Source: Macrostomum lignano (lineage: Eukaryota). From it: 64,000 bases of DNA. A model generated the notes under the pieces. It was not told where the DNA came from. It made no database searches and saw only the letters and a list, made by a program, of their open reading frames with translations. A program made the position numbers and the translations under genes. Location: assembly GCA_002269645.1 (NCBI GenBank), contig NIVC01000659.1, positions 248,001 to 312,000 of the forward strand. The letters run 5' to 3'. Shown here one piece after another: positions 7,715-64,000 of the stretch. Every line of letters starts with the position of its first letter. The first letter of the stretch is position 1.

Positions 7715-8278
7715 AACTCTATCTAGCACTCCTGACACCTCTATATCTAGCACTCCTGACACCTCTATATCTAGCACTCCTGGCACCTCTATATCTAGCA
7801 CTCCTGACACCTCTATATCTAGCACTCCTGACACCTCTATATCTAGCACTCCTGACACCTCTATATCTAGCACTCCTGACACCTCTATATCTAGCACTCC
7901 TGACACCTCTATATCTAGCACTCCTGGCACCTCTATATCTAGCACTCCTGACACCTCTATATCTAGCAATCCTGACACCTCTATATCTAGCACTCCTGAC
8001 ACCTCTATATCTAGCACTCCTGACACCTCTATATCTAGCACTCCTGACACCTCTATATCTAGCACTCCTGGCACCTCTATATCTAGCACTCCTGACACCT
8101 CTATATCTAGCACTCCTGACACCTCTATATCTAGCACTCCTGACACCTCTATATCTAGCACTCCTGACACCTCTATATCTAGCAATCCTGACACCTCTAT
8201 ATCTAGCACTCCTGACACCTCTATATCTAGCACTCCTGACACCTCTATATCTAGCACTCCTGACACCTCTATATCTAT
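7715..8278. repeat. Minisatellite, 24-bp unit (CTCTATATCTAGCACTCCTGACAC), ~23 copies
   Basis: Direct inspection; the 8-aa periodic ORFs on both strands are artefacts. Confidence 0.95.
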
Positions 8279-19169: not shown

Positions 19170-19300
19170 CCGTTCTCTCATTGGCTGCAGTAAGCGCGGC
19201 CTCTAACCAACCCCGCCCCATCTCTTCTAGTGCCGCGCCGCGCCGCGCTAAGCACACCTCCTCAACTCGGTCCTCATCATAGCGCACATCCGGTCCCCGC
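19170..19300 (-). promoter_or_regulatory. Putative Emx proximal promoter (CCAAT box, GC box)
   Basis: ATTGG at ~19179, CCCCGCCCC at ~19210 and a CpG-rich patch 200-300 bp upstream of the Emx ATG. Confidence 0.35.
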
Positions 19301-19326
19301 GCGTGGCAACTGCAGATAATAATTTG

Positions 19327-19750
<424 letters not shown>

Positions 19751-38135: not shown

Positions 38136-41100
38136 TCACTGCTCCTCAGAGTTGGCCGGAGCGTTCAGGCAGATCCACTGGCCGTCCAGGCTCTCCTTCC
38201 ACAGGCTGACTTTGTTGTCGCCGCTGCTCACCGCCAGCAGGTTGCCGGTGACGCTCCAGCTGACGTGCCAGAGGACGTCTTGGAATGGCGGCAGGGTGAC
38301 GGAGCTCCAGGAGGTGTCCTCGTCGCGACGGGTCCAGATAATAACCCGGCAGTCCTAAGGATTCAGATTGGGAATAGCGAATGGGCTACAAATAGAAGGG
38401 CCCAGCAACTGGGGATCTGGGAGGCTGGCCCAGCAACTGGGGATCTGGGAGGCTGGCCCAGCAACTGGGGATCTGGGAGGCTGGTGGCCCAGCAACTGAG
38501 GATCTGGGAGGCTGGTGACCCAGCAACTGAGGATCTGGGAGGCTGGCCGAGCAACTGAGGATCTGAGGGGTGGCCCAGCAACTGAGGATCTGGGAGGCTG
38601 GCCGAGCAACTGAGGATCTGGGAGGCTGGCCCAGCAACTGAGGATCTGGGAGGCTGGTGGCCCAGCAACTGAGGATCTGGGAGGCTGGTGGCCCAGCAAC
38701 TGGGGATCTGGGAGGCTGGCCCAGCAACTGGGGATCTAGGAGGCTGGCCCATCGACTGAGGATCTGGGAGGCTGGCCCAGCAACTGAGGATCTGGGAGGC
38801 TGGCCCAGCAACTGAGGATCTGGGAGGCTGGCCCAGCAACTGAGGATCTGGGAGGCTGGTGACCCAGCAACTGAGGATCTGGGAGGCTGGTGACCCAGCA
38901 ACTGAGGAGCTGGGAGGCTGGTGACCCAGCAACTGAGGATCTGGGAGGCTGGCCCAGCAACTGGGGATCTGGGAAGCTGGTGGCCCAGCAACTGAGGATC
39001 TGGGAGGCTGGTGACCCAGCAACTGAGGATCTGGGAGGCTGGCCGAGCAACTGAGGATCTGGGAGGCTGGTGGCCCAGCAACTGGGGATCTGGGAGGCTG
39101 GCCGAGCAACTGAGGATCTGGGAGGCTGGCCCAGCAACTGAGGATCTGGGAGGCTGGTGGCCCAGCAACTGGGGATCTGGGAGGCTGGCCCAGCAACTGA
39201 GGATCTGGGAGGCTGGCCCAGCAACTGAGGATCTGGGAGGCTGGCCCAGCAACTGAGGATCTGGGAGGCTGGTGACCCAGCAACTGAGGATCTGGGAGGC
39301 TGGTGACCCAGCAACTGAGGAGCTGGGAGGCTGGTGACCCAGCAACTGAGGATCTGGGAGGCTGGCCCAGCAACTGAGGATCTGGGAGGCTGGCCCAGCA
39401 ACTGAGGATCTAGGAGGCTGGCCCATCGACTGGGGATCTGGGAGGCTGGCCCAGCAACTGAGGATCTGGGAGGCTGGTGACCCAGCAACCGAGGATCTGG
39501 GAGGCTGGTGACCCAGCAACTGAGGATCTGGGAGGCTGGCCCAGCAACTGAGGATCTGGGAGGCTGGCCCAGCAACTGGGGATCTAGGAGGCTGGCCCAT
39601 CGACTGGGGATCTGGGAGGCTGGCCCAGCAACTGAGGATCTGGGAGGCTGGCCCAGCAACTGGGCATCTGGGAGGCTCGCCCAGCAACTGAGGAGCTGGG
39701 AGGCTGGTGACCCAGCAACTGAGGATCTGGGAGGCTGGCCCAGCAATTGGGGATCTGGGAGGCTGGCCCAGCAACTGAGGATCTGGGAGGCTGGCCCAGC
39801 AATTGGGGATCTGGGAGGCTGGCCCAGCAACTGAGGATCTGGGAGGCTGGCCTAGCAACTGGGGATCTGGGAGGCTGGCCCAGCAACTGAGGATCTGGGA
39901 GGCTGGCCCAGCAACTGAGGATCTGTGTAGAATGGGGATCGCATCGCACCTGGCCGCAGCTGGCAATCATGTCTCTGGACAGTCCGAGATTGGGCGCCCA
40001 GGCGACGTCGCGCACCCAGTCCGAGTGGCCCTCCAGAGTGCTCTCGCGGGACCACTGAGCGCCGTCGGGTTCCAGACGCCAGACGCGCACCTGTCAGCGG
40101 CCGGGAATAGCAACAAGGATTAACATGTGTATAATTTAGAAGTAACATATCAAGGTCATCCGTCATCCCCGTCACCTGTCCATCGCAGCCGCCGGATACC
40201 AGGCGCCGAGCGGTCGGTGCCGAGCCGCGACCACCGGCGGCGTCATCGGCGGCTGAGGAGGCCACGGGCGGGCAGAGCAGCGAGCTGGGCTGAGTGGCCG
40301 GGGCCCAGCTGACCGCGTTGACACCGATGGTGTGCGCGTTGGGGATTTTTGAGGTCTCCCAGTTGCCATCCTGAATAAACGCAGGTATGTTCTATTTTTT
40401 TGGATACATATCGGCTGAGTGAACCTATTTTCGATACATATCGGCTGGGTGAACCTATTTTCGATACATATCGGCTGACTAAACCTATTTTCTATACATA
40501 TCGGTTGACTAAACCTATTTTCTATACATCGGTTGACTAAACCTATTTTCGATACATATCGGTTGACTAAACCTATTTTCGATACATATCGGTTGACTAA
40601 ACCTATTTTCTATACATCGGTTGACTAAACCTATTTTCGATACATATCGGTTGACTAAACCTATTTTCTATACATCGGTTGACTAAACCTATTTTCTATA
40701 CATATCGGATTATTGAACCTATTTTCGATACATATCGGCTGTGGCATACATTCAAATTTTAATTGAGTAAGCTAGAACAGCTAACCTGGCCGCAGGTGAC
40801 CACAGAGATGCTGCCATCAGAGGAGGCGCAGGCAAACATTAATCCGTACTCGTGCGGTGCCCAAGCCACAGAATTAACGCTGCTCTCGTGCTGCGCGTGT
40901 TCATAAACAACCTCCCATTGCTGGTGCTGCTGTTGACGCTGCTGGTGCTGTTGCGGCGCTGCGGCGGACTCTCGCCAGACCAGCACTCGCCGATCGTAGC
41001 TGCAGGAGGCCAGCAGGGAGCCGTGAACAGGATGCGACCAGGCCACCTGCCACACAGGCCCCTCGTGTCTGGCCAGAGTGCACAGCAGCGATTGGCCGCG

Positions 41101-41232
41101 ATTTCGGACATCGAATACTCGGATGGTCTTGTCCGACGAGCAGGTGGCCAGCCGGGTGCCGTAGTAATCTAGCTGGGCATCGTGGATCATGTCATCGTGT
41201 GCAGTGTCCACTGTTTGCATTACAGACACCAT
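38136..41232 (-). CDS. SEC13: SEC13 WD40 protein (COPII / nuclear pore / GATOR2), 4 exons, 333 aa
   Basis: Exons 41232-40786, 40370-40176, 40090-39950 and 38354-38136, all phase 0 GT-AG. Motifs: [104 protein letters not shown]. Confidence 0.97.
38400..39925. repeat. 28/31-bp minisatellite (CAGCAACTGAGGATCTGGGAGGCTGGCC) filling SEC13 intron 3
   Basis: Direct inspection. Confidence 0.96.
40395..40740. repeat. ~28-30-bp minisatellite (TACATATCGGTTGACTAAACCTATTTTCGA) filling SEC13 intron 1
   Basis: Direct inspection. Confidence 0.92.
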
Positions 41233-41289
41233 AGTTGGCTTGGTAAATAGCGATCAATACTAAGCATGAATGGCATGCATTTACAATTG

Positions 41290-42255
41290 CAGTGGGGGCG
41301 ATTCTTGGGGTGGGTGACTGAATGAGGGGCGATTCTTGGGGTGGGTGACTGGATGAGGGGCGATTCTTGGGGTGGGTGAGGGGCGATTCTTGGGGTGGGT
41401 GACCGGGTGAGGGTCGATTCTTGGGGTGGGTGACTGGGTGAGGAGCGATTCTTGGGTGGGTGACTGAATGAGGGGCGATTCTTGGGGTGGGTGACTGAAT
41501 GAGGGGCGATTCTTGGGGTGGGTGACTGGGTGAGGAGCGATTCTTGGGTGGGTGACTGAATGAGGGGCGATTCTTGGGGTGGGTGACTGAATGAGGGGCG
41601 ATTCTTGGGGTGGGTGACTGGGTGAGGAGCGATTCTTGGGTGGGTGACTGAATGAGGGGCGATTCTTGGGGTGGGTGACTGAATGAGGGGCGATTCTTGG
41701 GGTGGGTGACTGGGTGAGGAGCGATTCTTGGGTGGGTGACTGAATGAGGGGCGATTCTTGGGGTGGGTGACTGAATGAGGGGCGATTCTTGGGGTGGGTG
41801 ACTGGGTGAGGGGCGATTCTTGGGGTGGGTGACTGGGTGAGGAGCGATTCTTGGGGTGGGTGACTGGGTGAGGAGCGATTCTTGGGGTGGGTGAGGGGCG
41901 ATTCTTGGGGTGGGTGACTGGGTGAGGGGCGATTCTTGGGGTGGGTGACCGGGTGAGGGGCGATTCTTGGGGTGGGTAACTGAATGAGCGGCGATTCTTG
42001 GGGTGGGTGACTGAATGAGGGGCGATTCTTGGGGTGGGTGAGGGGCGATTCTTGGGGTGGGTGACTGGGTGAGGAGCGATTCTTGGGGTGGGTGACTGAA
42101 TGAGGGGCGATTCTTGGGGTGGGTGAGGGGCGATTCTTAGGAATGGGTGAGGGGCGATTCTTGGGAATGGGTGAGGGGCGATTCTTGGGGTGGGTGAGGG
42201 GCGATTCTTGGGGTGGGTGAGGGGTGATTCTTAGGGTGGGTGAAGGGCGATTCCT
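41290..42255. repeat. G-rich ~23-31-bp minisatellite (GAGGGGCGATTCTTGGGGTGGGTGACTGAAT) ~60 bp upstream of the SEC13 ATG
   Basis: Direct inspection. Confidence 0.94.
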
Positions 42256-43409
42256 GGGTTGGCTGTGACAATTCAGGTGCCAGGTGAACAAAAGTGGCTA
42301 TTAGGAGTGAGGCAGTCGACTGGGAAAAATATTTTAAAGACAAAAGAGAAGATATACTATAGCAGCCGAAGTCGCATTTTGCAACAACTGGATAGCTATA
42401 ATGTATATTAATGATAACTCAATGTTAGTACGAAGTTAGTTTAGTAATTAATAGCTGTGTCAACTGAATACATAGATTTGAGTATTGTATTGACGACAGA
42501 GTCTTTCACTGACAACAGACTTTAACTCTACATACACTTACTAATCAGCTAATCTCTTAAAACATCTTATTAGAAGATCAGCACAGCAACGCTTATTTAA
42601 AAATTTATAGACCAAAGCCAGCCAATCAAAATACAAAAACCGGCTGGGGCCAATAAAATACAGAAGAGAAAGAGAGAGAATTTAAAAGAAGAAGCAAACA
42701 GCAAAGCACCGCTAGTCAGAGAAACGAAGAGGAAAAAGTTGATTAATATTTCAAATATTGATTTAATTTTTTAAAGCGCAGTAAAAGACCATATGATAGC
42801 CAAGAGAAAAGTGAAATGTTTGTTTTCAAATTGAATTATTTGATAAAAGGAAGCGAATAAAACCACATTAAGCAGATAAAATTAATACTATTATTACACA
42901 ATTATTGATAATTTTCGACGCAAAATAATAAATTGTAGTTCTGACAATAAAGGACTGTGTTTACTGATCAAAACTAATTCAAAAGCAAAGCGCATTTGCG
43001 TCACTTTATGCATTTCGCATTTATAACAACTCTATTTAGACTACTTGAGTCAGTAGCAAGTTAAGCGCTAACACAAACGACTCTTGGACGACTTTAGTCA
43101 TTTTAGTAATAAGTTGAGCTCATTTTTGACACTCCTGTCGATCACAGCAAACACAGTCTGGAAACTTTTGCAACACACCTCGTATAAGCCGCAAAATTAG
43201 AGATAAAAAAGAAGACAACATGACAGTCAAGACACAGGAGCATACACTCATATTGTGGCAATATAATAATTCTTAGATTATTCAGTAGGAAGTAGCAGGC
43301 TGAGGCCTTGATTAGTTTTAATCGTCGTGCCCTGGCGACATCGGATGCTGCAATGGGAAATATGTAAGGGAATTGATTGACAACGTAAATTAATTTTTGA
43401 CTAACAAAA

Positions 43410-44050: not shown

Positions 44051-44385
44051 GAGAGCCAACATAAAAAGATTATAATTGGATGGCATGGCAACATACTACT
44101 TATATTAGTAACGCATCTAGTAAAACAAATCACTGTTACAAAATTGTCATACGAGAAAAAAACAACCCAAAATATTCATTTAGCGGCCAAAAAGGAAAGC
44201 AAGGAAACAAAGGATGCCGAGAGGAAAGGCTCTAATTTTTTCTTTTGACTGCTTACTGTTTGCTTCTAGTAGACTGTAGATTATTTCGAGTATCTGTATT
44301 GTAACACCGACCACCGTTTGTTCGCTCGCAGTTGTTTACGCTGTGCATGTGCTTATAATAATGCAATAAAGTACTTCTATCTGCG

Positions 44386-47300
44386 TCACTTGTGGCCTGG
44401 ATTCGGGTGCTGCGTTTGAGCTTCATGATGTTCAGGTGTCTTATCATGATGTTCAGGTGTCTTGTCATCATGATGTTCAGGTGTCTTATCATGATGTTCA
44501 GGTGTCTTATCATGACGTTCAGGTGTCTTATCATGATGTTCAGGTGTCTTATCATGATGTTCAGGTGTCTTGTCGTCATGATGTTCAGGTGTCTTATCAT
44601 GATGTTCAGGTGTCTTATCATGATGTTCAGGTGTCTTATCATGATGTTCAGGTGTCTTATCATGATGTTCAGGTGTCTTATCATGATGTTCAGGTGTCTT
44701 GTCATCATGATGTTCAGGTGTCTTATCATGATGTTCAGGTGTCTTATCATGATGTTCAGGTGTCTTGTCATGATGTTCAGGTGTCTTATCATGTTCAGGC
44801 TTCTTATCATCATGATGTTCAGGTGTCTTGTCATCATGATGCTCATCATCCTTATCATGTCGTCCACTGTCTCGGTGGTCGTCGTGCTCCCGACTGTCCC
44901 GGTCATCCCGGTCGCGGCGATCCCGTCTGTCTCGATCGCGCCCACCGAGCAGCTGCAAAATTTCGTACTTCTACTACTGACATGAAGCTGACATGCTACT
45001 GACATGAAGCTGACATGCTACTGACAGACAAGGAGGCCCTCTTTATTCAATATCCAGCAAAAGCATGGAACTATCTCTATAAAAAAGTTGCAGACAGCTC
45101 AATAGCATTTTGATTGACAGGCCCCACACCCAGACGCTTACGTCCTCATCGTCGTCCGGGTGCTCGCGATCGTAATCGTCCTCGAACTGCTTGAATTCGT
45201 CGTCCTTGTAGGGCGGCGCGTCGTCCTCTTCGGAGGTCTGGGTGAGCGCGAGGGAAGGAGGTATATATAGGTTTGGGTGGCTCTTGAGTAGGCTGAAGAC
45301 AAGAGTAAAAAAGGCCAAGAGGCCAAACGGACAAGAGGCCAAAGAAACAAGAGGCCAAAGGGACAAGAGGCCAAAAGGGACAAGAGGCCAAAGGGACAAG
45401 AGGCCAAAGGGCTAAGAGGCCAAAGGGACAAGAGGCCAAAGGGACAAGAGGCCAAAGGGACAAGAAGCCAAAGGGCTAAGAGGCCAAAGGGCTAATAGGC
45501 CAAAGGGCCAGGAGGCCAAAGGGCTAATAGGCCAAAGGGCCAGGAGGCCAAAGGGCTAATAGGCCAAAGGGCCAGGAGGCCAAAGGGCTAATAGGCCAAA
45601 GGGCCAGGAGGCCAAAGGGCCAAAAGGGCAAAGGGCCTAGAGGGAAGATTGAGCCAAGAGCCAAGAGACCAAAGGGACAAGAGGTCAAAGGAAAAGAGGC
45701 CAAAGGGCCAAGAGGCCAATATAAACCCCAAACCCACCTTCCAATCATCGTCCTTCTTGAAGTCGGGATTCTTAGTCCACCGCTCGAACTCATCCCAGCT
45801 GATCATCATGTCCTTGTTGGTGTCGACCTTGTCCAGCACCTCCTGCCGCATCCGCTCCATCTCGTGCTGCTTCTCTAACGCATTTACCGTAGTATCGTTA
45901 GTGCGATTGTAGGCCTTCTCCAGCTGTTGGCGGGGGGTCAGTTTGATATGAAAAACTTGTATTATGGGGTCATTTAAGGTCAAGCAATGATTTTCATAAT
46001 CAACACACTACTGACACCTTTTTATGCATTTCTTCTAAATTCTAAAACTAAAAAATAAAATCTTTGCTTTTTCATACCGCAGCACCTGCTAAAATATCAA
46101 AGCAAGTCTACAAATAGAAAGCAAGCTAAACTACCTTTAGTTGCCTTTAAAAAATTATCTAAATTGATTTTCTGCTACTATTAGTAATGACTCACTTCAA
46201 TTGAAGATGCACAATGAGACGAAAATTTATTGGAAGCAAAAATGGAAGATAGTTTAATTTATGGATTCTACATACATACTACTTAACAAATCTAATAAGT
46301 AGTAAGTAGCACACGAACCTCTTTCAGGAATAGCGCTTCAATCTCGTTAACGTCCAAATGCCCGTCGCCATTGACGTCTAGAAATTGACAACAGAATCGA
46401 GATGCGTTTAACTGATTCTTGATTGTACTATTGTCTACTAACAGTAGTCAAAAAACAGCTTGCAGAATCCAATGCTAACAAAGAAAAAACAAAGACTCAG
46501 CCGTTACCATGCAGTAGGAAAAATGTTTTCGGATTGAAAGAATCCTTGTCCATGTGGTCCTCATCAGCCCAGGCGTCCCGCAGCTGCTCACTGCTGCCCT
46601 GTTAGGGATATATTTGGCATTTTGAAGACAAAATCGGGCCAAAAGGAAAAAAACAAAGGACTTTTGTTCAGTAGGAAAAAATAGCCTTTTGAAAAACACC
46701 TGCAAATTAAATTTGACATAGTAACAGCAGACACCGAAGTAATGCCTACATTTTAGGTTTATTAATTGTAACTTTCTGATATTTCTACTGTTAGTAAAGC
46801 GGAATGGAATGTTTATTTATTTTTTGTCAGAATGTCGTGTTTTTTGATTGATCTCAGACTAAATCAGAAAGATATAGTAACTACAAAACCGAAAAGAATA
46901 AACAAAAGTAACAAGAAAAGTCGATCGAGATCAAACTAATCTCCCGAATTCCTGAAAGACTCAGTCGTTACCGTGCAAATTAAAAAATGTTTTCGCGTCG
47001 AATTCTTGACTAAGTCCGTCCTGATTGGTCCACAGGTCCATCAGCTGGGCCAGACTGCCCTGGACGCGTTATTTTATAACTTTGCACTTTTGTAAAGTTT
47101 CAGAACTTGGGAGATTTCGAGAAACTGGGCCATGAGAGATGAAGTGCGACTATGGGTCAGCTGGGGTCATGAGGGGTGACTGTGGGTCAGCTGGGGTCAT
47201 GAGGGTGACTGTGGGTCAGCTGGGGTCATGAGGGGTGACTGCGGGTTAGCTGGGGTCATGAGGGATAACTGTGGGTCAGCTGGGGTCATGAGGGTGACTG

Positions 47301-50300
47301 TGGGTCAGCTGGGGTCATGAGGGTGACTGTGGGTCAGCTGGGGTCATGAGGGATAACTGTGGGTCAGCTAGGGTCATGAGGGATAACTGTGGGTCAGCTG
47401 GGGTCATGAAGGGATAACTGTGGGTCAGCTGGGGTCATGAGGGTGACTATGGGTCAGCTGGGGTCATGAGGGGTGACTGCGGGTTAGCTAGGGTCATGAG
47501 GGATAACTGTGGGTGTTTCAGAAATTGAAACACCCCCCCCCCAAGTTCCTAGTAACTGTTTCAAAGAGCAAGCTAAAAATGCGCAACAACGCACCGGATG
47601 GTGAATCTTTTCATGTTGCTTGTGCTTCTTTTTCTCTTCTTGGTATTCCTTCTCGGCCACTTCTCTGGCTTTGGTGTCGTTAATCTTGTGCAGCTTGCGC
47701 AGTCTCAGATGCTCCTTCATCATCTCGTACTGCTTGTATTGCTCCTAAATTGAAGAAAGGATAAGTAAGTTGTAGAAAACTACTGACTAGTGTCTATGGC
47801 CTACTGAGCGCTTCTTAACGAACTATCCCTCCTTGGTTACAGCATCTTGTTATCTTCCTCAGCATCTTGTTATCTTCCTCAGCATCTTGTTATCTTCCTC
47901 AGCATCTTGTTATCTTCCTCAACATCTTGTTATCTTCCTCGGCATCTTGTTATCTTCCTCAGCATCTTGTTATCTTCCTCAGCATCTTGTTATCTTCCTC
48001 AACATCTTGTTATCTTCCTCAGCATCTTGTTATCTTCCTCAGCATCTTGTTATCTTCCTCAGCATCTTGTTATCTTCCTCAGCATCTTGTTATCTTCCTC
48101 AGCATCTTGTTATCTTCCTCAGCATCTTGTTATCTTCCTCAGCATCTTGTTATCTTCCTATCTCTTGTTCATTCTTCATTCTCTTCTTCATTCTTCATTC
48201 TCTTCTTCATTCTTCTCTTCCTCATCCTCCCATCTCTTCCTCATCCCGCCATCTCTTCCTCATCCTCCCATCTCTTCCTTATCCTCCCATCTCTTCCTCA
48301 TCCTCATATCTCTTCCTCATCCTCCTATCTCTTCCTTATCCTCCCATCTCTTCCTTATCCTCCCATCTCTTCCTTATCCTCCTATCTCTTCCTCATCCTC
48401 CTATCTCTTCCTTATCCTCCCATCTCTTCCTCATCCTCCCATCTCTTCCTCATCCTCCCATCTCTTCCTCATCCTCCTATCTCTTCCTCATCCTCCCATC
48501 TCTTCCTCATCCTCCCATCTCTTCCTCATCCCGCCATCTCTTCCTCATCCTCCCATCTCTTCCTTATCCTCCCATCTCTTCCTCATCCCGCCATCTCTTC
48601 CTCATCCTCCCATCTCTTCCTCATCCTCCCATCTCTTCCTCATCCTCCTATCTCTTCCTTATCCTCCCATCTCTTCCTCATCCTCCTATCTCTTCCTCAT
48701 CCTCCCATCTCTTCCTCATCCTCCCATCTCTTCCTCATCCTCACATCTCTTCCTCATCCTCCTTTCTCTTCCTCATCCTCCCATCTCTTCCTCATCCTCC
48801 CATCTCTTCCTCATCCTCCCATCTCTTCCTCATCCTACCATCTTTTCCCCATCCTCCCATCTATTCATCATCCTCACATCTCTTCCACAGACTCCCATCG
48901 ATGCCTCCGATACCACAGCGCTCCCCAGCTCACCTGCTTGGCCTCGTCCACCCTGTGCATATCGGAGACCACTTGGCGAATCAATTTTTCCAAATCGGAC
49001 GACTCAAACGAATGGGGATTCTCGTGATCCAAATGAGCCTTCTTAATGGTCTCCTGGTCCATGTTGAACACATCCGGATGGATTGGAACTTCCGCTTCGC
49101 GCATCGGATTTCCGGCGGCAGCTTTTTTAGCTTCTAACATTTTCTCCAACGCGTTGAGCCGGTCAACCTCTTTGCGCTTGATCTCGTCTAGGCGAGTGCG
49201 CACAGAGTGGTCAACGAACTCCAGCTGGCTAGCCAAATCTCCCGCCTGCACAGTGGGGAAAATTTGTAGGAACAAATAAGAAGCAAAAACCCTACTGACA
49301 CCATTATCTGCTTGTCCATGCTTGTCTACCGCGGCGCTCTGATGTGCCAGGGGTCCCAAGGCTCGTTTCTAATCCAAGTGCAGTCACATTAATTTGGGGA
49401 TAAATTGGAATCTCCGCTTGCCTCTGCTTGTGCAATTAACGCCATTGAGGGCCAAACCCCAAGGCACAGTGAAGTGTACATGCCTAACGATAGATAAAGT
49501 TAGGGCCGCTGTACACTCCTGTGTGAGTGTGTGCCTGTGCGTATGACTGCGTACGTATTCTTGTGCTAATTGTGTGCCTGCTCAGGGGAGTCTGTGGAAT
49601 GGGGAAGCCTCTCTTGCTTCTAAATTTATATTATACACTATTCAAGCTGTGTCTGTGTCAGAATGTGCCGGGTAAGCTTCCTAGAGTTGAGTGGTAACTT
49701 CATTAAATTAATAAACAATAACTGCAATTTCTATATAATAACCTATAACTATATCAGGGGCTTGACAGCCAGATGAAAGAGGCCGACCGGCCGACGCCAC
49801 AGATACTAGAATAACTGGACGGGCCACTCAGCACATTTGCGTGCAAGCTACTTTCAGTTCAGTAGTAAGTTAAACTGAAGCATTTTAATGTATTTTTAAA
49901 GCCAAGGCTCATTTATTGGCTTTTGATTCCCAGCTTGAACCCTCCAACCGCGCCTTTCCACACTAACCCCGCCCCGCCCCAATTTTTATTGCCTTTCTCG
50001 GAAATCCAGCCTAAAGCTGCCATGTACATTTCAGTGGACTGGCCAATGTACATTATGGCTGAGCCAATTAGCAAGTTGTTTAAACCTGAAAGCTTGGGCT
50101 TCTAAACTTATTGAAGTTATTTCAGCCGCCTTTATTTTATAAAATAGTTTATGTATTCTTCTTTGCTACTGAACTGAAAGTAGAAAGCTGTTTTACTTAC
50201 TACATATGCCTGAGTGGCCCATCTGGTTATTTTAGTAGTATCTATGGCCGACCCCTAGTCTATATAGTCACTCCTAAATATATAAAAAACCAACCATCAC

Positions 50301-52461: not shown

Positions 52462-55400
52462 TGCTAAAAAGTGCTCTTTTTATCTACCTGCTTATTTCTT
52501 TTACCTCTTTTTTTCTTTCTTTTATTCTCTTATTTAGCTCATAGGAATAAGCTAAATGATTACTACCTAGCTCTAGAGATATCAAGGTTTGTTAGCCTCT
52601 ATACTTTAAGGAAGTTGGTATACCATGCACTAGAAAAAATTTTTAGCACAATCAGTGTGGGACTTTTATTTCATTTATGCATTTTTTCTATGCCAAAACT
52701 TGTAAAACCTAAAATTAAAATTGTAAATTAAAAATGCAAATTAGATTAGCTAATAATTTTTTACTTTAAAACAAATCTCTTTAAAAATGATATACCAAGG
52801 AACTTAATATCATGGTTATATAATAAGCGCATTAGAGACCTTTTGTAATGCAAATTAATTAAAAATAAAACATTTTTTTGAAAATATAATTTTTTATTCT
52901 TCAAATATAGTAGAGCATATGCATAAAAACTTCTAAATTAATATTAAATGGACTACTTAATCTTACAAGCTATTTGACTCAACTTTAAATACTTTAGTAT
53001 TAAAAAATATGATAGAAATTTTTTGATTTTGAGTAATATAAAAGGGTCAACAATTTGACTTAAAAGTATTAAGTTGAGAACTTATAGGTAGGCCTATTAT
53101 ATTACAAGAAGTTACAGATAACATGTTGTAAAGTTGTGTGGTAGGGCTGCTTGTTCTCATTGTAACTATCCCACTGCTACAACCAAAAGCTGTCCCAGGG
53201 CTCTCTATTTCCTTTATTGTTTAATCTTAATTGCTGCCACCAAAGTTGTCCTAAGGTTATTTTTTATTACTGATCTTATTGGTTTAGTTAGGTGCCGCAC
53301 TAGTCAGCTGTTGCCCTCGCCCTCGCCTCAGGCTTCTATCTGCCGCTGGGCAGTTGCCTGTCCCTCCCGCCTGTCCTCTGGCCTGTCCTTTGCCCGTTGC
53401 CTGTCTGTCTGTTTGTCCTCGTTTGCCCCTTTTGCTTTGTTTTCCCTTTTGCAATGCTGAGACATCTTGGTCTGGCCTGCCTCTGTTTCGTTCACTGTCA
53501 GGCATCTCCAAATTTGGAGTGCCCTCCTGTTTTCCTGTCCCACAGTCACAAGTGCCTTCACTTGTGGGCCTTTTCCCCTTGTCATGTGAGCTAGTCACAT
53601 GACAAGGCCTTCTTCTTTCTTTAGTCCAAAGTGCAATGATTTCATCATTGTACGCTGGGCTCGTGTTTATGGGGCGATTGGGGCGATCACGTGCGCCCGG
53701 ACCCCCTTGCCTCCTCTGAGGCAGGACCTGCTTGTTTGTTGCTAAAAATAGTAACAGTCACTCATGACTCTCAGCGGGGTCTTTCGTGCTATGGTGCAAT
53801 TGATCCTCTCTATAAATGCAGCCCCTCTCATGGCTTGGCTCAGACAAGCCTTTCCAGAACCCCTTCTTTCTAGCTGCGTTTTCAAACCACGTTTTCACCC
53901 GTTCCTGTTTTTGAGCCCGAGATTCTCTCAGTTCAAACTCTAAGTTTGTGCCGAGTTTGCGCTGAAATCAAACTCCAAGACTCCCGACTTTGCGTGTGCC
54001 TGCTTCCGTGCTCCTGCTATCAATTAGCAGGCCAGCTCAGATAGCCCGAAGCTAGCACTTTTGCTCTCACCCCACACTAGCCCGGCAAGGACTGCTGATG
54101 GTGGGCACCGCTGCGCGAGAACTGCAAAATCCGCACGGAGTGCGAGTCTCTCTCTCTATCATCTTAGTTATTTGCTTCTATGAGCTCAGCACCTTACTGA
54201 AGGCTGCGACTCTGTGAAGCTGGTGGCAGCACTACCAACGCTACTAGATCAACCCGGAGACTTCCCAGAAGAGCTCGCAAGGTAGGCAGCTCACGTGATT
54301 GATTGGGAAGTAGCGACAGGAAACAACCAAGTACTTCAGTTATTACTTGTCTATTTATTGGTTGCTTATGTACTTTTTCTAGTAGCATATATACTTCTAT
54401 TGGTAGTATATGTACTTCTAATATACTTTCTGGCCTGAGCAGTCTAATGGCACTATATCTCTAATTCTATATGTTCCCTAGTTTACTCCTCTAGGAGGGT
54501 TTCTCTCAGTCTGGGCATTATTGGGATCAGAGGGTCACAGCTTATTTGCTGGGTATTCTGTCCTAAGGCGGGTTTCTGAGACTCTGAGTCTGGATTCCTC
54601 TACCCTATGGTAGGATTTCTGCCTTCTAAAGGTGATTCTAAATCTGGGTATCTCATTCTCTGAGAACAGGCTGAATTCCCCCAATCTTGGTTTATCCCTG
54701 AGCTAATATCTACTACTTATAAATGAGTAACACTAAAACAATTCTTGAGCTTGACTGATTTCTTTTCAATAGTTGAAGGAGTTCAATGAACAGACAAGCT
54801 TAAAAGTGAGAAAACAAAACAAGGTTTATTTTCCTTGGCTTCCAGTGGGCTCCCTTTTATAGTAATGTTTTTTGATAAAGTTTATAACAAATGATAATAT
54901 TCAAAATATACAAAATATATTGCTTATAAAAATATTTATAATATTCGTACAATATAACAATAGTAGGGCCTAGTATTTTTCGAAAAACAAAATTTCTTCG
55001 AAACTAATGGCATAAAAACAAGGCCTATTACAGTTGGATATAGAAAATTTTATAATATTTAACTTTGGTAGAAAAACTTCATAGGTCTAGTCATACATGC
55101 GCAACCTCCTAAATTTGGTCGGCCGTGCGACTTAGTTTTAACAAAAATGCGACATAGTTTTCGGCCAAAAATGCGACTTACATGAAAAAAACCTGAAAGC
55201 AAAATTAACGCAACTTTGGGTAAACGGCAGGAGTAACTATGACTGTCTTTATTAAGGCAAAATGCTTCGTCAGCTACTTAATACTACTTTGGTATTTATT
55301 TGGGTGGGCATTTTTGCAACTTACCTTGGTTGGCCGCCAAATCAGTCATCCATATTGGCCAACTATTGTGCATATGGTTTTGACTCTTGTCATTCCTAAT

Positions 55401-55500
55401 CGTATTTGTACCCCATGTGGCACTAGAACAGTACACTTGACACGGAGTGTTTTAGGCATGATTGTACAGTGTAAGGTTGCAAAAGTGGGGAGTGGCAAAG

Positions 55501-57027
55501 ATACATATGGGCATTTCCGCCAAATAGGGACACAAATTGTGTCCGAGTGTGCAAAGAAGAAGAAAAATGTTGAAAACAGGAAATCTAACTAGAATTTGTT
55601 ATTAAATTTCTTTTTTTATCTTGTAGAAGCACAAGAAATTTTCTGGTAACAATAAAAGTTGCCGATAAAAGTTATACTGATCTAAGAAGACGATTAATAC
55701 CGTAGGAGCATAAAATTTTATATTGAGGCGTAATTGCTTGCTTATAATTAACTTTCTTTTAGTCAATAATTTTTTAATTGTTTCTTAATGCTTTTAATCA
55801 ACTTTTTAATTCAGATTTTGTTATTTTTGCGTATAAGTTCATACGATATTTTTTAACTTTGTCAAAATGTTTTTTTCTGCGCGATATACCAAACGTAAAT
55901 CTCTAATTTTACTTTTCAGTAACTAGCCGATCACCGTAATTATTCAGAAGTTCCAGTGCAACTTTGCAAGCAGCAAGAAATGCATATGCTTCCACAATCT
56001 AGAGAAAGTTTTTCTGAAGCAATATTACAAGTAAATGTGGGGAAAATTGATTTAGTACTATGTAAATTAATATCTACATACTATAGTGCAAAATGTAAAT
56101 TACATTTTTATTGATAAATAAACAAGAAATTAATGTGAAACTGTTTTATTTTCCAGCTTTTATACTTAATGATAGTCTTGTAAGACTGATTTTGAGAAAA
56201 AAAACTAGCGAAAAATAAAATAAAGGGTACAACATGAAAATACATCTCGTGTAAGTAGTGTGCTTACTACATTTAAATGTTAATATTTAAGGTATTTTGA
56301 CAGATTAAGGTTCAGCAGACCACTTTTTGTGAAGCTCTGTATGTCGGCAATCCATAAATATATCGTTTTCAGCTAATGAAAAGCACTAAAAAAAATTATT
56401 GGGTACAACATGAGTACAATCTTGTGGTTAAGATGTCACATCGAAAAAAAATTAATGTCTTAGAAAAATGTATTAAGCAAATTCTATTGCTAAAAAATAT
56501 ACTGATACATCATCGCAAAGATGTTTTCCTTCATTTAAGCTAAAAAACGTGTAGATTGAAAGCCTTATGAGTAAATGAGAGGGTACAACATGAGTACAAA
56601 CGATACAAAAACTTACCATTTATAATTTTTGGTATAGCAAGAAAACTGACAAAAATCAATGACTTCTTGCAGGTGTTGTGACGAAAAGGAATGATTTTAA
56701 CAAAGTTTAATGTGTTTTTTTCATGAAACAAAGAGAATTACTATCAAGAATGTTTTTTTCGCTCTTTTATTCAATGTTGAAGTTAAAAATTGTGTGTTTG
56801 GACATCCAAAAAAGTGGCGTCTACATAAGTTTAAAATGGTTTATTCAACATTAATTTTGCGATTAACAATCTTTAAATAGCTTTAAATTGAGCAAAAGTG
56901 GTTGTATTTTTCAGTTTAAGTCCTTGTTTGACTTCAATTAGCTGGCTTAAGCTACAATTCATCATTTTCTGTTTGTTGAAGTGTAATTTTCCGATAGTGC
57001 CTAATTGGCGGAAATGCCCATATGTAT
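55501..57027. mobile_element. Nested ~1.5-kb AT-rich non-autonomous element with ~30-bp TIRs (ATACATATGGGCATTTCCGCCAA)
   Basis: 55501-55530 is the reverse complement of ~56997-57027; three internal GGGTACAACATGA motifs; no 8-bp TSD seen. Confidence 0.6.
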
Positions 57028-57335
57028 ATATAGCTGTATGAGTATGATGGCATAAGCTAAGGCTAAGTCAATGCATGCAGCGATAAAAGCAGTCTGTAAA
57101 GCCAAATAGTGAAAGTTGACCTTAACTTATAGCACCTTGGCAGCCTATGCTGTCTGCCTGCATCTGATACGAGCATATAACTAAACTACCAAGGCAATTG
57201 GTTGTATTTACACTTACTTTCTGTACATGAATTGGTAAAGGTAAGGGCTTTTAAATGTTTTATTTATATAGTAATACTCATAAATCAATTTTATTTTATC
57301 ACCAAAATCATATACTCGACTTAATCTTTCACAGA

Positions 57336-60300
57336 ATGATGTACAGCCTTAGTTGTCTTTGCCTACTGATTCTAAGTGGCATCCTAGCTATCAATGGTAT
57401 TCTAGCTGAGAGTGAGTGCTCAATTGTTATAAATGAGTTAAATACTGATGAGCCTAATATTGGATCTCAAGAATTTTCAGAGTTCATTGAGCTGAAGAAA
57501 GTTTGTTCCACAACTGCAATGCTATTAGGATCAGTGCCAGTGAGACTCCGTGATTTTCTTCTGATTGGAGTTCAAGAATATAGCGGCGATTTTAGACGAC
57601 CTGTGGTTTCATTTTCTGCTGACTTCTATCGGTCCTCGGGCTTCAAAACGGACAGCAGTTTCTTTGTTATTGCATCAAAAGAGAAGCAGGAAGCAGCAGA
57701 TATGTTTTTTACCGATACATCTATTGGGTATCAGGGAAAAACTAGACATGGGCTGCCAAGTTCCGCTCCTAGCGGATCATCGCAGTCATCCATAATTGAT
57801 TTTTTCAAGTCTGCTAGTAAGACAATTCCAACAGAACCAAATGCATTAAAGAATGGGAATGGTAAAAGTGCTATGGCCATTATTCTCTTGTATCAATGAG
57901 ACTTTTCTAGATCAGAATCGGACAGTTCAAGTTCCACAACTGCCAGTAGCATTGGAAAACTGCGACTAGCTAAAATGCATGCAACACAAAGAAGACCTGT
58001 TTATGAAGATAAAATTATCATTGATAACTCATTAGCTGAAATTATTAGGAACAATGTGCATGACATGATCATCTATGCACGAAGTACACAAAATAACAGG
58101 TGCACATTTTTTGAGTCCATTTATCGTAGGCTAAGAGACAAGCCCAACTACATCTTAAAGCCAGCAAGAGAATGGGATGAACTTGGTCATGAGGACTATT
58201 CAATAAACCGGTGCCCTGAATCCAGCAGTGAGTTACGAAAGCCTTTGCTTTTTACAAGGTGGAAACTTGGACAGTTGACTCCAGGTAGAGAAAATGACTG
58301 CTCAGGTGCTCATTGGATTTTAGAGGACAATATTGAAGCCATCATAAATACACCTTCAAGAGAAGCAGGTACATTGGCAGACTCAGCATTAGCATCTGCT
58401 TTATCAGCAACAGAAAGAATCGAAATGCGACTAGCTCCTGCTCCAGCTCCATGTTCTGAAAGCTCACACCGTAGTGAATTGGCCAGGTCCTATGAATTTT
58501 CAGAGCAAATAGCAGCTAATCGAGATCATGCTGTTCAAACTGCTGCTGCAGAAACTTCTAATTTTTGCTCTGCTGCAAATGTACAGGAAAGAAGAGAGTT
58601 GTTGGAGAATGACCAGCAAACAAGCAAACTACAAGTGGAAATTATTAGGCAAGTAAATATTCAAAGACAATCAACGAAACGATCACTTTGCCAAAGTCCT
58701 ATTGTTGATTTAGATTCGAGCGACTCAAGGGGTTCAGGTGATGTTGAAATAGTACAAGTAAATACTGCAGAAGCAGGGCCATCGCAAAGAAAAATACCAT
58801 GCATAAGCACATCTGCAGACGCATGTCTAGCCACTTCAGCATCAAAGCCCTCATCTTCCTCTATGATGGGCGAAAATATTGAAGTTTTCCCTAAAAAGGA
58901 CTGGGAGGATACATCTGGTTTTCGAGAGGAGTGGTTACATTCTTTGGAGATGCACCAGTCACAGTAAGTAAATGGAAACTGACGAACTGTAAATTAATGT
59001 ATAGTGTATTGTGTATTGCACTTATTAGCATATTGCTTTTAGATACTAACAAATAGTCCAAATCCCAAAATATTCTCTAATTTGACCATTGCAGATCATT
59101 TTCAAGAAAATTTGTGTCACAAGAAATGAAGACATGGTTTCAATATGTTCAAAACACCGAAGATCTATCAAGATCTGGAATACAATGTTGGATCTGCAGA
59201 AAATTTTTGAATGCACATAAGAAAAAGGAGACAAATCTAGAGAGCCAACATAAGTTAACTTTTGCAACAGAACAAGGCTACATTCCCAAAGGTCATGCAA
59301 AAGATAGCGTACGAAGAAAACTACAGGAACATTCATCAAATACACTTCACAGTGACGCCATAAAGTGGATGAAGGAAAAACATACTTCAGTTCTTGCAAA
59401 GCAACTCAAACAGATGAATGAGGCCGCTAGACTAGCTAAAACTAAACGAGATGAAATAACAGCCCGAGTTTTGACAACAGTTTTATGCCGAAGTCAAATC
59501 TAATATTCCATTCAGTGCTCATCCAAATATGATTGATTTACAAGTAAAAAATGGGTTGGATATGGGGAGCCATCATAAGCATCGCAAAAGTGCTGCAGCA
59601 ATGGTGGAATCAATCAGTAATACAATGCATCGGACATTTGTGAATTACATTAAAAGTGCTGACAATCTTCCGATTTCTATTGTACTAGATACAACGTCTG
59701 ATATTCATTCAAACAGCTACGTCATGATATACTTCAGAGTTCTTGAAAACAGCCAACCTTTGATGTTTTTTTATCGGTTTAAACGTCTGACTGAAGTAGA
59801 GACTGGACGAAGCATTTATGAACTTCTCATCCATTTATTTTCGGATGACAAGCTAGAAGATGAAATCAAACGAAGGCTATGAGGGGTGACAACTGATGGT
59901 GCATCCGTAATGACAGGAAGTCGAGTGGGATTAATAAGTCAACTGAGGCCTTGGGCTAGCAAACAATTTTTTCAGCACCATTGTGCAGCGCATAAGTTAG
60001 AACTTTCAATCTATCATGCCTTTGAAATCTTCCCATTTATGCAACATCTCGATAAGAATATAAATTCTCTACACAAATTTTATATGAGCCACGCTGTTAA
60101 ACGTAAGGCATCTTTGGCACAAACTTCGGAAGCACTCAACTTGGTTTTCTATGAATTAAAAAGAATATATCGCATCAGGTGGGTTGCATCGGAAGTGTCT
60201 GCTCTTGATGTGATTCGAAAGTCGTACTACTTGCTTCTGACAAATTTAGAAAATATCAAATCACCTTCCTCAGGCTTTGATGACGAAAGTAAAGCAACTG

Positions 60301-61481
60301 CCTCTGGATTATTGAAAACATTGCAAAATGTCCGGTATTATTCATTACATCTATTTCTCATGGACATTCTAAAATTACTGGAATTTGAGTCCTTGCAGTT
60401 TCAAAGAGCCAAGGGTACATTTATTGGCTTGCAAGAATGCCACACTAACCTTATCCATTCACTAGAAACCTTAAAAACGAACAATGGTCCTCGCATTGTG
60501 GACTTTTTGGCTTCCTGCAAGTGTCGTCGAGTTTTGGGAACTGCAGATGGATATCCGCAGCTGGAATACCATTCAGGATGTCACACAAGAGACCTATCTT
60601 ATTCTAACTTTGCTTTTCCTTCCGGCCCTGGAAGCAGCGATCCAACAGAGAGGTTTGAGTTGAAGCAACCAGGTTCTGCTGCAGACAGATCTCTAAGAAA
60701 TAGATTATTTGATGCTAGTGGACGTGGCAGTGTTGTTGACATGGGAGCTTATCCAGCACTGGATGAGATTCGCAGTCGAATCATTGATAGCATAATTGAT
60801 CAGCTGCGTAATTATTTTCCTGAGGATGACTACTCAATATTTAATGTGCTCAACCCAGTGTTATTGCCTAATGCTGAAACATTACATACTGTCTTTACAT
60901 ACAGTTCGAGAATCATACCTCTTGCTAGACGGTTTGGAATGGAAGATGACAGCTCTGAATCTGAAACAGAGGACCATCTTTCTGATTCAGACTCTAGAGA
61001 TGCAGATGCTTCAGAACGCGCTACAGAAAGGACAATCTCTGGTCAGTTTGGTCTACTCCTAAAAAGTTTGATCACTTCGCATAGTGTTGACTTCTGTGCC
61101 TACAAAGGCAAAGGTCCGGTGAAATTTTGGAGTCACTTTCTAGAGACAAGAACTGTTGAATGGCTGCCCAGAATAAAGAATCTAATTATGGTTGTGTTAA
61201 CTTTGCCAATATCATCAGCTGAGGCTGAAAGAGGGTTTTCTATCTATAAGCACATTGCATATGACAGGAGAACACGCTTGGCACCAAAAACATTGGAGCA
61301 TCTACTACGGATTCGAATAAATGGGCCTCCGCTGATGAAATTTAAGCCGGATATTTATGTCAATGATTGGCTAAAAAAACACTGGCGTTCTGATGCTCCT
61401 GGAGGTCAACGGCAAAAAGAATCCAACGTAGACGAGGAAAATAAAGATTCTGATTCTGATTTGCTAAGTGGACTATTTTGA
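57336..61481 (+). pseudogene. Disabled hAT (ZNF862/KIAA1586-like) transposase with N-terminal signal peptide and LTD-like domain; 2 coding exons (57336-58963, 59095-61481)
   Basis: DDE/hAT motifs: SIVLDTTSD, TTDGASVMTG, HCAAHKLEL, RW, LPISSAEAERGFS, RRTRLAPKTLEHLLRIRING; zinc-finger-like WFQY...CWIC...H...H. Intron CA|GTAAGT...TTGCAG|A is phase-compatible. Lesions: TGA 57897-57899, extra T at 59481-59484, TGA 59880-59882. A 5'UTR intron lies at 57241-57334. Confidence 0.88.
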
Positions 61482-61829
61482 AAGTTTTTTATCAGTTTTA
61501 ATCTGCTACAATTTTAATCAATTATTACAATGGTACATGCATAATCATTAAGACTACAGTTCTTCTAAGTTCATATATAAGACCGTTAGAATCTTGCAGT
61601 TTTAATTTGCTAATTAAATATTATTAAAAGTATGATTTGCAATTGTAATAGGGCTGAAAAATTACTGCTTATAAGTTATTCTATCCCTATTTCTATTCCT
61701 TAGCCATTTCTGGCTTCGTAATTCTTAATTTTTCAAATTGATGCGTTAATGCACACGTAGCCTACACCCTAGTAAGTGATACATTAAATTCATCCTAAAC
61801 TAATCCTATCCTAATAATCCTAAAGATGC

Positions 61830-62800
61830 TCTGCGACTTAACTCAGTCCTGCTGCGACTTACCTCGGCCCTGCTGCGACTTAGCTCGCCCTCAGTGCGAC
61901 TTAGCTCTCGCTCGGTGCGACTTAGCTCGCCCTCGGTGCGACTTAGCTCGGTCCTGCTGCGACTTAGTGCGACTTAGCTCTCGCTCGGTGCGACTTAGTT
62001 CGCCCTCGGTGCGACTTAGCTCGGTCCTGCTGCGACTTAGCTCGCCCTCGGTGCGACTTAGCTTGGTCCTGCTGCGACTTAGTGCGACTTAGCTCTCGCT
62101 CGGTGCGACTTAGTTCGCCCTCGGTGCGACTTAGCTCGCCCTTAGTGCGACTTAGCTCGGTCCTGCTGCGACATAGCTCGCCCTCAGTGCGACTTAGCTC
62201 TCGCTCGGTGCGAGTTAGTTCGCCCTCGGTGCGACTTAGCTCGGTCCTGCTGCAACTTAGCTCGCCCTCGGTGCGACTTAGCTTGGTCCTGCTGCGACTT
62301 AGTGCGACTTAGCTCTCGCTCGGTGTGACTTAGTTCGCCCTCGGTGCAACTTAGCTCGGTCCTGCTGCGACTTAGCTCGCCCTCAGTGCGACTTAGCTCT
62401 CGCTCGGTGCAACTTAGTTCGCCCTCGGTGCGACTTAGCTCGGTCCTGCTGCAACTTAGCTCGCCCTCGGTGCGACTTAGCTTGGTCCTGCTGCGACTTA
62501 GTGCGACTTAGCTCTCGCTCGGTGCGACTTAGCTCGGTCCTGCTGCGACTTAGTGCGACTTAGCTCTCGCTCGGTGCGACTTAGCTCGGTCCTGCTGCGA
62601 CTTAGTGCGACTTAGCTCTCACTCGGTGCGACTTATTTTGCCCTCGGTGCAACTTAGCTCGCCCTTAGTGCGACTTAGCTCTCGCTCGGTGCAACTTAGT
62701 TCGCCCTCTATGCAACTTAGCTCGGTCCTGCTGCGACTTAGCTTGCCATCGGGTGCGACTTAGCTCGCCCTCGGTGCGACTTACCTTGTCTTCAGTGCTG
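61830..62800. repeat. Subterminal array built on a GCGACTTAG core (units ~12-26 bp) just inside the right TIR of the hAT element
   Basis: Direct inspection; the same motif occurs in the left end (55126-55180) and in the MITE (63525-63532). Confidence 0.93.
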
Positions 62801-63309
62801 CAACTTACAGCACTTACAACTCTTTTTGTGTTTTTTTCTTTCTCTTTGCTCCCTTTTTCTCGTTTTTTCCTTTTCCTTTCCCCTTTTTTGTCTTTTGTTT
62901 TTTCGTTTCTTTTGGCGGTTAATCAATTTTGTGACTTACTTGGTTGGCCGCCAAATTGGTGGGCCAGATCGGCCGACTCGTCCGACTGTTGCACATGTAT
63001 GGGTCTAGTTTTATCATTTATAAATACACTATGCACCATATAAGCTAAATTAAATAAAAGTAGTACAATTTTTTTACAACAATCTTTTTAATATTTTAAA
63101 GCAGTTTTTATTTCTTTGGTAGAAAAATAGCAAAAATTTTAGTTATTTGTCTAGTTATTAGATAGATAGCTATTTCATTATTCATTTAAAGAAATGTCCA
63201 TAGTCAGAAAGGTGTCTTATATGCCAGAATTTTCTAGTATGCATTAGCCTTTTATAGTTTATTGGCTTTCATATTTGGCATGCTTGAATCCTAAAAAGTT
63301 GTATTTTTA

Positions 63310-63567
63310 CATACATGTGCAACTGCTGGCCGATCTGACCACTGTAAATTATGATGGACCAGGGGTAAGGTGCAAAAATGCCTACCACAAAGAATACAGA
63401 TGTAGTACTAATTAGATGACGAGGCATTTAGCCCTTATAAGACAGTCATAGTTACTTCTACAAAGTTGTGTTAATGTCGCTTTAGGGTTTCTTTCACAGT
63501 TAAGTTGAATTTTTGGTCAAAAAGTAAGTCGCATGGCCATTGTAAATCAGGGGGGTTCGCATGTATA
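63310..63567 (-). mobile_element. 258-bp MITE of the same hAT family, inverted relative to the large element
   Basis: Starts CATACATGTGCAAC and ends GGTTCGCATGTATA; perfect 8-bp TSD TATTTTTA (63302-63309 and 63568-63575); its reverse complement aligns along its length with 55092-55380. Confidence 0.9.
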
Positions 63568-64000
63568 TATTTTTATATATAAAGAGTGATATAAAAAGCC
63601 ATTTAATAGGGAACCAGTTAATTTAGTGAGGTTGACTTGGTGATAAGCAATTTAGCAACAGTCAGTTTGGTAAGGGGGTGGTTAAAATAGAACAGTAATT
63701 TGTTATCTATTGCATTGAGTTTGCATATTTACTCTGATTTCAAAAAAGCCAAAATGTAATTCCACATACTAGTGTTCTACTATAAAGAGGGTCCATGTAC
63801 CATAACTATAGCTGTAAGCAAAACTATGGGATATTCTAATTCTCCATATTCCATAGCCATAGGGACCCCAATATTACTATATTCCCATAGTTCCTGTAGC
63901 CATATCTATAGTTTTAGCAAAGTCTAGAAAACAAAATATTTTAAATAAAGAGAACCTAGTGCTTAAACAATTGCAAATTAAGTTAGAAAATAAAATAAAC

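Follow-up and report, generated by a model that had tools for sequence, protein, structure and literature searches.

How does a transposase, an enzyme that has to reach chromosomal DNA, come to begin with a leader and a domain of the kind found on cell-surface proteins? The question is raised by a hAT DNA transposon of Macrostomum lignano that lies in a stretch of 64,000 nucleotides, referred to here as the window (GenBank assembly GCA_002269645.1, contig NIVC01000659.1, positions 248,001 to 312,000 of the forward strand; all coordinates count from its first letter). The transposon spans 7,910 bp (55092-63001), and its gene lies inside it at 57336-61481. An initial annotation, made from the letters of the window alone, had described this gene as a hAT transposase fused through an intron to a signal peptide and a lamin-tail-domain (LTD)-like module, and had proposed that splicing might switch between an exported protein and a transposase. 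The reading that we favour, and consider probable, is that of an inactivated hAT transposon in which a leader and an LTD, found throughout a clade, have been selected as part of a nuclear transposase. The two N-terminal parts are an integral, selected portion of the transposase across this whole clade of elements and, judged by profile comparison and domain order, are homologous to the start (signal peptide and first LTD unit) of LTD-repeat proteins on animal cell surfaces.

Architecture of the transposase gene

The gene is recovered from five open reading frames (ORFs; 57255-57899, 57975-58967, 59114-59503, 59529-59882 and 59886-61481), all of which are present and can be joined into one frame, as the initial annotation had claimed. 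The first two already share a frame and are parted only by the TGA at 57897-57899. The further claim of two TGA codons, one frameshift and one phase-2 intron proves correct: after repair, the coding sequence has 4,014 nt and gives 1,337 aa plus a stop, and the motifs quoted earlier are all found in it (MMYSLSCLCLLILSGILAINGILA-ESECS, IVINELNTDEP..EFIELK, NGNGKSAMAIILLY, HDMIIY, EDYSINRC and TPGRENDC). The features of the gene are listed below; NLS stands for nuclear localisation signal.

~57241-57334, + strand: putative intron in the 5' untranslated region, with GTAAG donor and CAG (YAG) acceptor kept in the relative L003 and indels inside
57336-57407, + strand: hydrophobic, signal-peptide-like leader MMYSLSCLCLLILSGILAINGILA (aa 1-24), 24 uncharged residues
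57408-58307, + strand: divergent LTD module (aa 25-324), ECSIVINELN to TPGRENDCSG
57897-57899, + strand: in-frame TGA at codon 188, inactivating; P0001 (a 92 % relative) and P0002 encode R here
58308-58963, + strand: low-complexity linker (aa 325-542), carrying an NLS-like patch and the W-E-D-T..F..W motif
58782-58802, + strand: degenerate NLS-like patch SQRKIPC, in the linker of the window copy
58899-58934, + strand: conserved DWEDTSGFREEW motif (W-E-D-T..F..W), in the linker
58964-59094, + strand: GT-AG phase-2 intron, across which the frame changes and homology carries on
59186-59350, + strand: CxxC...H..H zinc-finger-like motif (C574, C577, H622, H628), invariant in 14 full-length relatives and the window copy
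59481-59484, + strand: T run with one T too many (frameshift); dropping one T restores TTVYAEVKSNIPF
59679-60194, + strand: catalytic core with D741 (IVLDTTSD), D810 (VTTDGASV), C839xxH842 (HHCAAHKLE) and RW..SE909, all in invariant columns
59880-59882, + strand: in-frame TGA at codon 805, inactivating, the second stop in the repaired frame
61164-61313, + strand: hAT C-terminal dimerisation region (ISSAEAERGFS...), PF05699, E 3.7e-7, 30.3 bits vs a cut-off of 21.4

The repairs are in keeping with the relatives. Restored TTVYAEVKSNIPF agrees with RTVYFEIKSN and RTVYAEVRAN at the same place. Exon 1 ends in ...TCA CA|GTAAGT (58963/58964) and the acceptor is ...CATTGCAG|A (59094/59095); the spliced junction HQSQ|SFSRKFVSQEM-KTW aligns without a gap with YQSRYVATTIFTTER-KLW of P0014, and the splice is supported because its spacing equals that of this intronless relative. 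The 5' untranslated intron at ~57241-57334 is plausible. Once repaired, the element's single gene would have two coding exons for a 1,337-aa transposase, in the order leader, LTD (~300 aa), linker (~200 aa), CxxC-H-H zinc finger, DDE/RNase-H-like core with CxxH, and hAT dimerisation region. With two stop codons and one frameshift, the window copy is unable to make the full-length enzyme; its inactivation is recent, since it keeps all family-invariant residues but one G-to-A change.

The C-terminal ~800 aa had been recognised as a hAT transposase, and rightly so: PF05699 scores above its cut-off, the core residues are retained, and the Hermes transposase, sole relative in the PDB, is matched over the same C-terminal dimerisation region. 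D741, D810, C839/H842 and RW..SE909 are invariant across 14 full-length relatives and all kept in the window copy, and by analogy they are assigned to the catalytic triad. Pfam gave no match to zf-BED in the window protein at E<=1, although the CxxC...H.....H motif is invariant. Weak precomputed matches to PF27073 (FAM200-ZBED5_RNase-like) are found on the relatives P0014 and P0095 and suggest that the transposase family broadly sits near the Buster-type (FAM200-ZBED5) hAT elements. This placement, based on the matches of these relatives, would agree, again broadly, with the earlier label of ZNF862/KIAA1586-type. Searches for homologous proteins gave no named relative of the transposase core: the repaired full-length protein found none, and a 14-sequence full-length alignment found only P0014 itself.

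The leader and the lamin-tail-like module

The signal-peptide-like N-terminus claimed for this protein is borne out by its uncharged stretch, by its hydropathy (maximum 10-residue Kyte-Doolittle value, KD, of 2.93) and by the leaders of relatives. A leader with KD >=2.0 is present in 44 of the 62 relatives that have at least 12 residues ahead of the module, compared with 3.9 % of control segments taken from these proteins. Among full-length ORFs, about 9 of 15 carry a hydrophobic leader and 4-5 of 15 do not (P0020, P0059, P0097 and P0095). The end of the leader, ILA|ES, agrees by inspection with the -3/-1 rule. In L002, L006 and L008 the leader starts at the first Met closely after in-frame stops, and between the window and L003 it shows four synonymous changes and one non-synonymous change. 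These starts and the 4:1 synonymous ratio rule out an artefact of T-rich upstream DNA or of an over-extended ORF, and the leader is the true N-terminus of the protein. Between subfamilies its sequence has diverged (non-synonymous divergence, dN, ~0.97) and its hydrophobic character is retained. It adjoins the LTD exactly as does the signal peptide of an amphioxus protein, P0098.

This amphioxus protein (Branchiostoma floridae LOC118427361; UniProt C3ZWX4, named LTD domain-containing protein) consists of a signal peptide, 8-9 units of ~180 aa (Pfam LTD x8, E 7.5e-95) and a transmembrane helix. When a 55-sequence alignment of the transposon module is compared with eight LTD units of P0098 by hhalign, the match has a probability of 99.7 % and an E of 1.8e-25, and its 181 columns span the whole unit, from VINELN to TPGxxNDC. 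The AlphaFold2 model of the transposon module (predicted local distance difference test, pLDDT, 85; predicted template modelling score, pTM, 0.86) has a strand order that corresponds one-to-one to that of a control model of a P0098 unit (pLDDT 86), and each of the top 14 PDB matches of this control is a tail of lamin B1 or lamin A/C (probability ~1.0, E 3e-3 to 2e-2). LTD is also the only Pfam family matched recurrently by members of the family, in 6 of 55 and below threshold (best E 0.0026). Thus, the LTD-like character proposed by the initial annotation stands by way of P0098, through the profile match to its units and the resemblance of their model to lamin tails; the part that did not materialise is a direct match in Pfam or Foldseek. 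On the strength of these profiles, the N-terminal module is classed as a divergent LTD that shares ancestry with the units of LTD-repeat proteins on animal cell surfaces.

The likeness to the amphioxus protein covers both the layout, in which a signal peptide is followed directly by an LTD unit (VINELN..EFIEL..FVIGS..NG..A..LY..D..VY..S.NRC..TPG..NDC), and two conserved cysteines (SRC / NDC). The amphioxus protein differs in having its units in a tandem of 8-9, in its transmembrane anchor and in lacking a transposase. The transposon, by contrast, has only one unit, into which two large segments are inserted (aa ~92-157 and ~165-218 of the model) and which has three additional conserved cysteines. 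The five conserved cysteines of the module comprise C271 and C300, which are invariant and also found in the amphioxus units, C234, which is present in 95 % of members, and C6 and C35, which are present or absent jointly (Fisher p=1.2e-5). This pattern would fit disulfide pairs, with joint metal binding as an alternative. Lamin tails (lamin A/C and lamin B1; PF00932) appear to share the beta-sandwich fold class with the module, the models being linked via the amphioxus units. They differ in that the transposon module has no direct sequence or structure match to them, and in that lamins are nuclear and have neither a leader nor these cysteine pairs.

The linker behind the LTD carries a feature of another kind. 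In 23 of 30 relatives the W-E-D/T-T motif is preceded, at a distance of 11-40 aa, by a basic cluster, for instance PKKKRV in P0002, QRKRP in P0001 and RRKRRLS in several others, with QRKIP as its degenerate form in the window copy. We take this cluster to resemble a monopartite NLS. Its conservation argues for nuclear use of the protein and speaks against a secreted fate for the fusion.

Distribution, selection and the mobile element

A word-indexed search found four relatives; P0003 (38 % identity) and P0004 (32 %) extend beyond the module as far as the zinc-finger region of the transposase. A profile built from these four was searched against 1.84 billion representatives of clusters at 50 % identity, and the N-terminal module matched 266 of them at E<=1e-3 and 146 at E<=1e-10. 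Fourteen single ORFs of 1,011-1,249 aa have the module at the front followed by the transposase, and 3 of the 5 full-length ORFs scanned have the Pfam hAT dimerisation region at their C-terminus. A distant locus, L002, is colinear with the window gene, and a scan of metagenome loci gave one short locus. The claim that leader and LTD belong to the transposase gene is therefore upheld, the same order being found in at least 14 single ORFs and within one element bounded by terminal inverted repeats (TIRs) and a target-site duplication (TSD). The leader-LTD-transposase order marks the clade as a whole and is no isolated capture. Matches of ~350-400 aa were considered as stand-alone LTD genes and rejected, as longer members of the same subgroup (P0043, P0045 and P0054) continue into the transposase; the short matches end at a conserved W-E-T-T motif or at contig ends.

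The LTD module is under purifying selection, with a ratio of dN to synonymous divergence (dS) of 0.17 between the window and L003 and of ~0.14 between L003 and L006, where dS is saturated. The linker, at 0.3-0.4, is under weaker constraint than the module.

L008, the contig of the intact 1,147-aa P0014, begins and ends with a 43-nt inverted repeat of 98 % identity (1-43 and 4583-4625), and looks like an almost complete element of the same clade that may still be active. Among the database proteins, P0036 has the first 258 aa of the P0035 LTD module attached to a PspA/IM30 domain of bacterial type, which probably reflects a chimeric assembly. P0073 belongs to the transposon family and was deposited as a hypothetical protein of a Bacteroidota metagenome-assembled genome; its DNA is probably eukaryotic and was placed in a bacterial bin.

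In the window, the ends of the element and its derivatives are as follows; MITE denotes a miniature inverted-repeat transposable element.

55084-55091, no strand: left TSD GGTCTAGT; the identical 8-mer stands at 63002-63009, immediately outside the inverted ends
55092-55105, + strand: left TIR CATACATGCGCAAC, 13/14 positions matching the right end
~55507-57021, no strand: nested insertion of ~1.5 kb with 31-nt inverted ends (ATACATATGGGCATTTCCGCC...), in the 5' part of the element
61831-62783, + strand: minisatellite of ~45 units of 21 nt, each with TGCGACTTA (Tandem Repeats Finder), in the 3' part of the element
62988-63001, - strand: right TIR CATACATGTGCAAC (read on the - strand), pairing with the left end at 13/14
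63002-63009, no strand: right TSD GGTCTAGT, a perfect 8-bp copy of the left one
63310-63567, - strand: MITE-like non-autonomous derivative of 258 bp, with inverted repeats shared with both ends of the large element

The TIRs are 14 bp long, and the right-hand end of the element reads GTTGCACATGTATG on the forward strand. The CATACATG termini named by the initial annotation are confirmed: the window holds four matches, three of them exact, vs 0.63 expected by chance. The inverted repeat of the nested insertion (55501-55531 / 56997-57027) has 94 % identity, and the insertion is missing in L003, where window position 55506 is joined straight to 57022. The MITE lies 300 bp from the large element and has an 8-bp TSD of its own, TATTTTTA, at 63302-63309 / 63568-63575. 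It is made up of ~230 bp of the left end and ~25-50 bp of the right end, stands in the opposite orientation to the large element, and has A in place of G as its final base. Copies of 92 % identity are present in three sequencing runs. A domesticated host gene is ruled out by the TIRs, the TSD, the MITE, the multiple copies and the inactivating mutations. The segment 55092-63001 is a copy of an autonomous hAT DNA transposon that lost its activity recently.

The motif TGCGACTTA occurs 42 times in the window vs 0.31 times expected. Thirty-nine exact copies, all on the + strand, lie in the minisatellite, and the others are at 55126 and 55172 beside the left TIR and at 63525 in the MITE. The motif may be a one-time transposase-binding site that has since expanded. 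The array as a symmetrical set of subterminal binding sites is unsupported, the copies at both ends all being on the + strand.

The 8-bp TSD, the short TIRs, the DDE core with CxxH and RW..SE and the C-terminal PF05699 region are shared with hAT elements of the Buster type, to which FAM200A/B and ZBED5 are domesticated relatives and Hermes transposase a solved one; the PF27073 matches of the clade's members are weak. To our knowledge, described hAT transposases begin with a BED or other zinc-finger DNA-binding domain, whereas here a leader and a ~300-aa LTD stand ahead of the zinc finger, and the clade proteins have 1,100-1,340 aa as against ~600 for Hermes. Another point of comparison is the group of host-transposase fusion genes formed by exon capture, such as SETMAR and the KRAB- or SCAN-transposase fusions. 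Like these, the clade combines a cellular domain and a transposase in one reading frame. However, the fusion described here is a mobile, multi-copy element with TIRs and TSD, found clade-wide rather than as a single immobile host gene, and the part captured is of a secretory or extracellular type, not chromatin- or DNA-binding.

The surroundings of the transposon differ from it in composition, the host sequence being far more GC-rich than the AT-rich element. GC-rich exons at 39584-41232 on the - strand encode a WD40 beta-propeller protein (Pfam WD40, E 2.7e-18), presumably SEC13-like, whose gene is broken up by proline-rich minisatellite sequence. Nucleobindin-like exons lie at 45588-45983 and 48874-49359, also on the - strand (NUCB1_N, E 9.6e-20; EF-hand pair, E 1e-4), and point to an animal genome. 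Long micro- and minisatellite arrays are unusually abundant in the window and give rise to long spurious ORFs on both strands.

5800-6400, 7640-8280, 19300-19760, 24000-27030 and 28990-31220: satellite arrays
36325-37100, 38360-39970, 41280-42290, 44250-45000 and 47830-49140: further satellite arrays

The intron, the fate of the protein and its meaning

The initial annotation placed an intron at the centre of its proposal: if retained, it would yield a secreted LTD protein, and if spliced, an LTD-transposase fusion held in the endoplasmic reticulum (ER), thereby limiting transposition. The intron is real, and its position and phase are shared by L003 (92 % nucleotide identity) and L006 (53 % protein identity). 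Its conservation across lineages as far apart as these would suit such a switch, as would the resemblance of the leader to a signal peptide, the TAA that follows upon retention and the many database matches that stop near the end of exon 1. However, the description of the parts as fused through an intron does not hold. The intron lies inside the gene's linker region, at the end of the linker ~220 aa downstream of the LTD and after the NLS-like patch and the W-E-D-T..F..W motif, so that it is not the seam between captured part and transposase. It also has no counterpart in P0003, P0004, P0014 and 13 other full-length ORFs, which read through in one uninterrupted ORF. Because most relatives are intronless in this way, the family needs no switch. 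The immediate TAA is present as stated, retention giving CAG TAA, but it fails as evidence: when an intron of phase 2 starts with a GTAAGT donor, its retention always gives xxG TAA, as in L006 (donor GT|GTAAGT, reading GTG TAA), so the stop is automatic and uninformative. The short database matches are prokaryote-style gene calls on short contigs and give no evidence of short proteins. We judge the switch to be improbable; the intron would be a later gain in this sub-lineage, with no switching role.

That the N-terminal part has nothing to do with the transposase, being a host exon or neighbouring gene brought into frame by chance, or a novel beta-sandwich without LTD ancestry, is a far more remote prospect. 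It would draw on the degeneracy of the window copy and on the lack of direct matches, which also weighs on the reading preferred here. Pfam found no match, LTD included, at E<=1 in the first 543 aa of the window protein; Foldseek found no significant match for the module model in PDB or BFVD, returning only weak Ig-like sandwiches (none at E<=1e-3 in PDB); and PDB sequence searches with profiles of the N-terminal module gave noise or nothing. Because of the Pfam and Foldseek results the LTD assignment is transitive rather than direct. Nearly all relatives come from metagenome and Logan contigs. Chance joining, however, is contradicted by the same order in at least 14 single ORFs and at distant loci, by the enclosure of the gene in one TIR/TSD-bounded element, by the hhalign E of 1.8e-25 to bona fide LTD units and by the purifying selection on the module. 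A further difficulty for the preferred reading is where the protein goes. A signal-peptide-like leader sits poorly with a purely nuclear role, and so do the co-varying C6/C35, the invariant C271/C300 and an extracellular-type ancestor. Leader, cysteines and ancestry favour the secretory pathway, whereas the nucleus is favoured by what the enzyme does chemically and by its NLS-like patch. The leader could be a working ER signal peptide throughout the clade, with a disulfide-folded LTD and with the protein, or a large share of it, lumenal or secreted. Any nuclear pool would then be only a minor fraction, the product of an alternative start or retro-translocated protein. Such an account is helped by a leader that directly adjoins the LTD, as in the amphioxus cell-surface protein, that stays hydrophobic while its sequence diverges, and that has an acidic or neutral flank behind its hydrophobic core, and by cysteines that behave as in extracellular LTD units. 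Yet a DDE transposase has to reach chromosomal DNA, the NLS-like patch is conserved, 4-5 of the 15 full-length ORFs have no hydrophobic leader, and N-glycosylation sequons are few (0.75 per module). On balance, it seems rather unlikely.

The preferred reading, a nuclear transposase with a selected leader and LTD, can be put as a sequence of events. The ancestor of the clade would have captured a 5' exon encoding a signal peptide and first LTD once. In the nucleus the LTD may now serve the transposase as a putative accessory module that binds chromatin, a host factor or the ends of the transposon. The leader may have been kept as a signal by which part of the protein is diverted or limited, or it may be a hydrophobic stretch put to other use. 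An export-type leader and a cell-surface-type LTD fronting a DDE transposase form an architecture of which no description was found in the searched literature, be it as an LTD-hAT transposase fusion or as a hAT transposase with a signal peptide; one candidate paper, PMC9229212, was irrelevant. The transposon-family sequences that were looked up carry no functional name.

Transposases are known to acquire DNA-binding and chromatin-binding domains. Should the LTD act in the nucleus as an accessory module, it would represent a new kind of host-derived domain in transposases and would give a handle on how these elements select targets or partners. Should the leader function as a signal peptide, that would be a novel means of limiting or relocating a transposase. 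A doubtful but consequential prospect is a widespread hAT clade whose transposases begin with a working ER signal peptide and a disulfide-bonded LTD of extracellular type, the enzyme or a processed LTD product passing through the secretory pathway; were this true, the transit would amount to a built-in brake on transposition or to action outside the producing cell. The clade is large (~266 clusters at 50 % identity) and has intact ORFs, so that both ideas, that of the accessory module and that of the working signal peptide, are directly testable.

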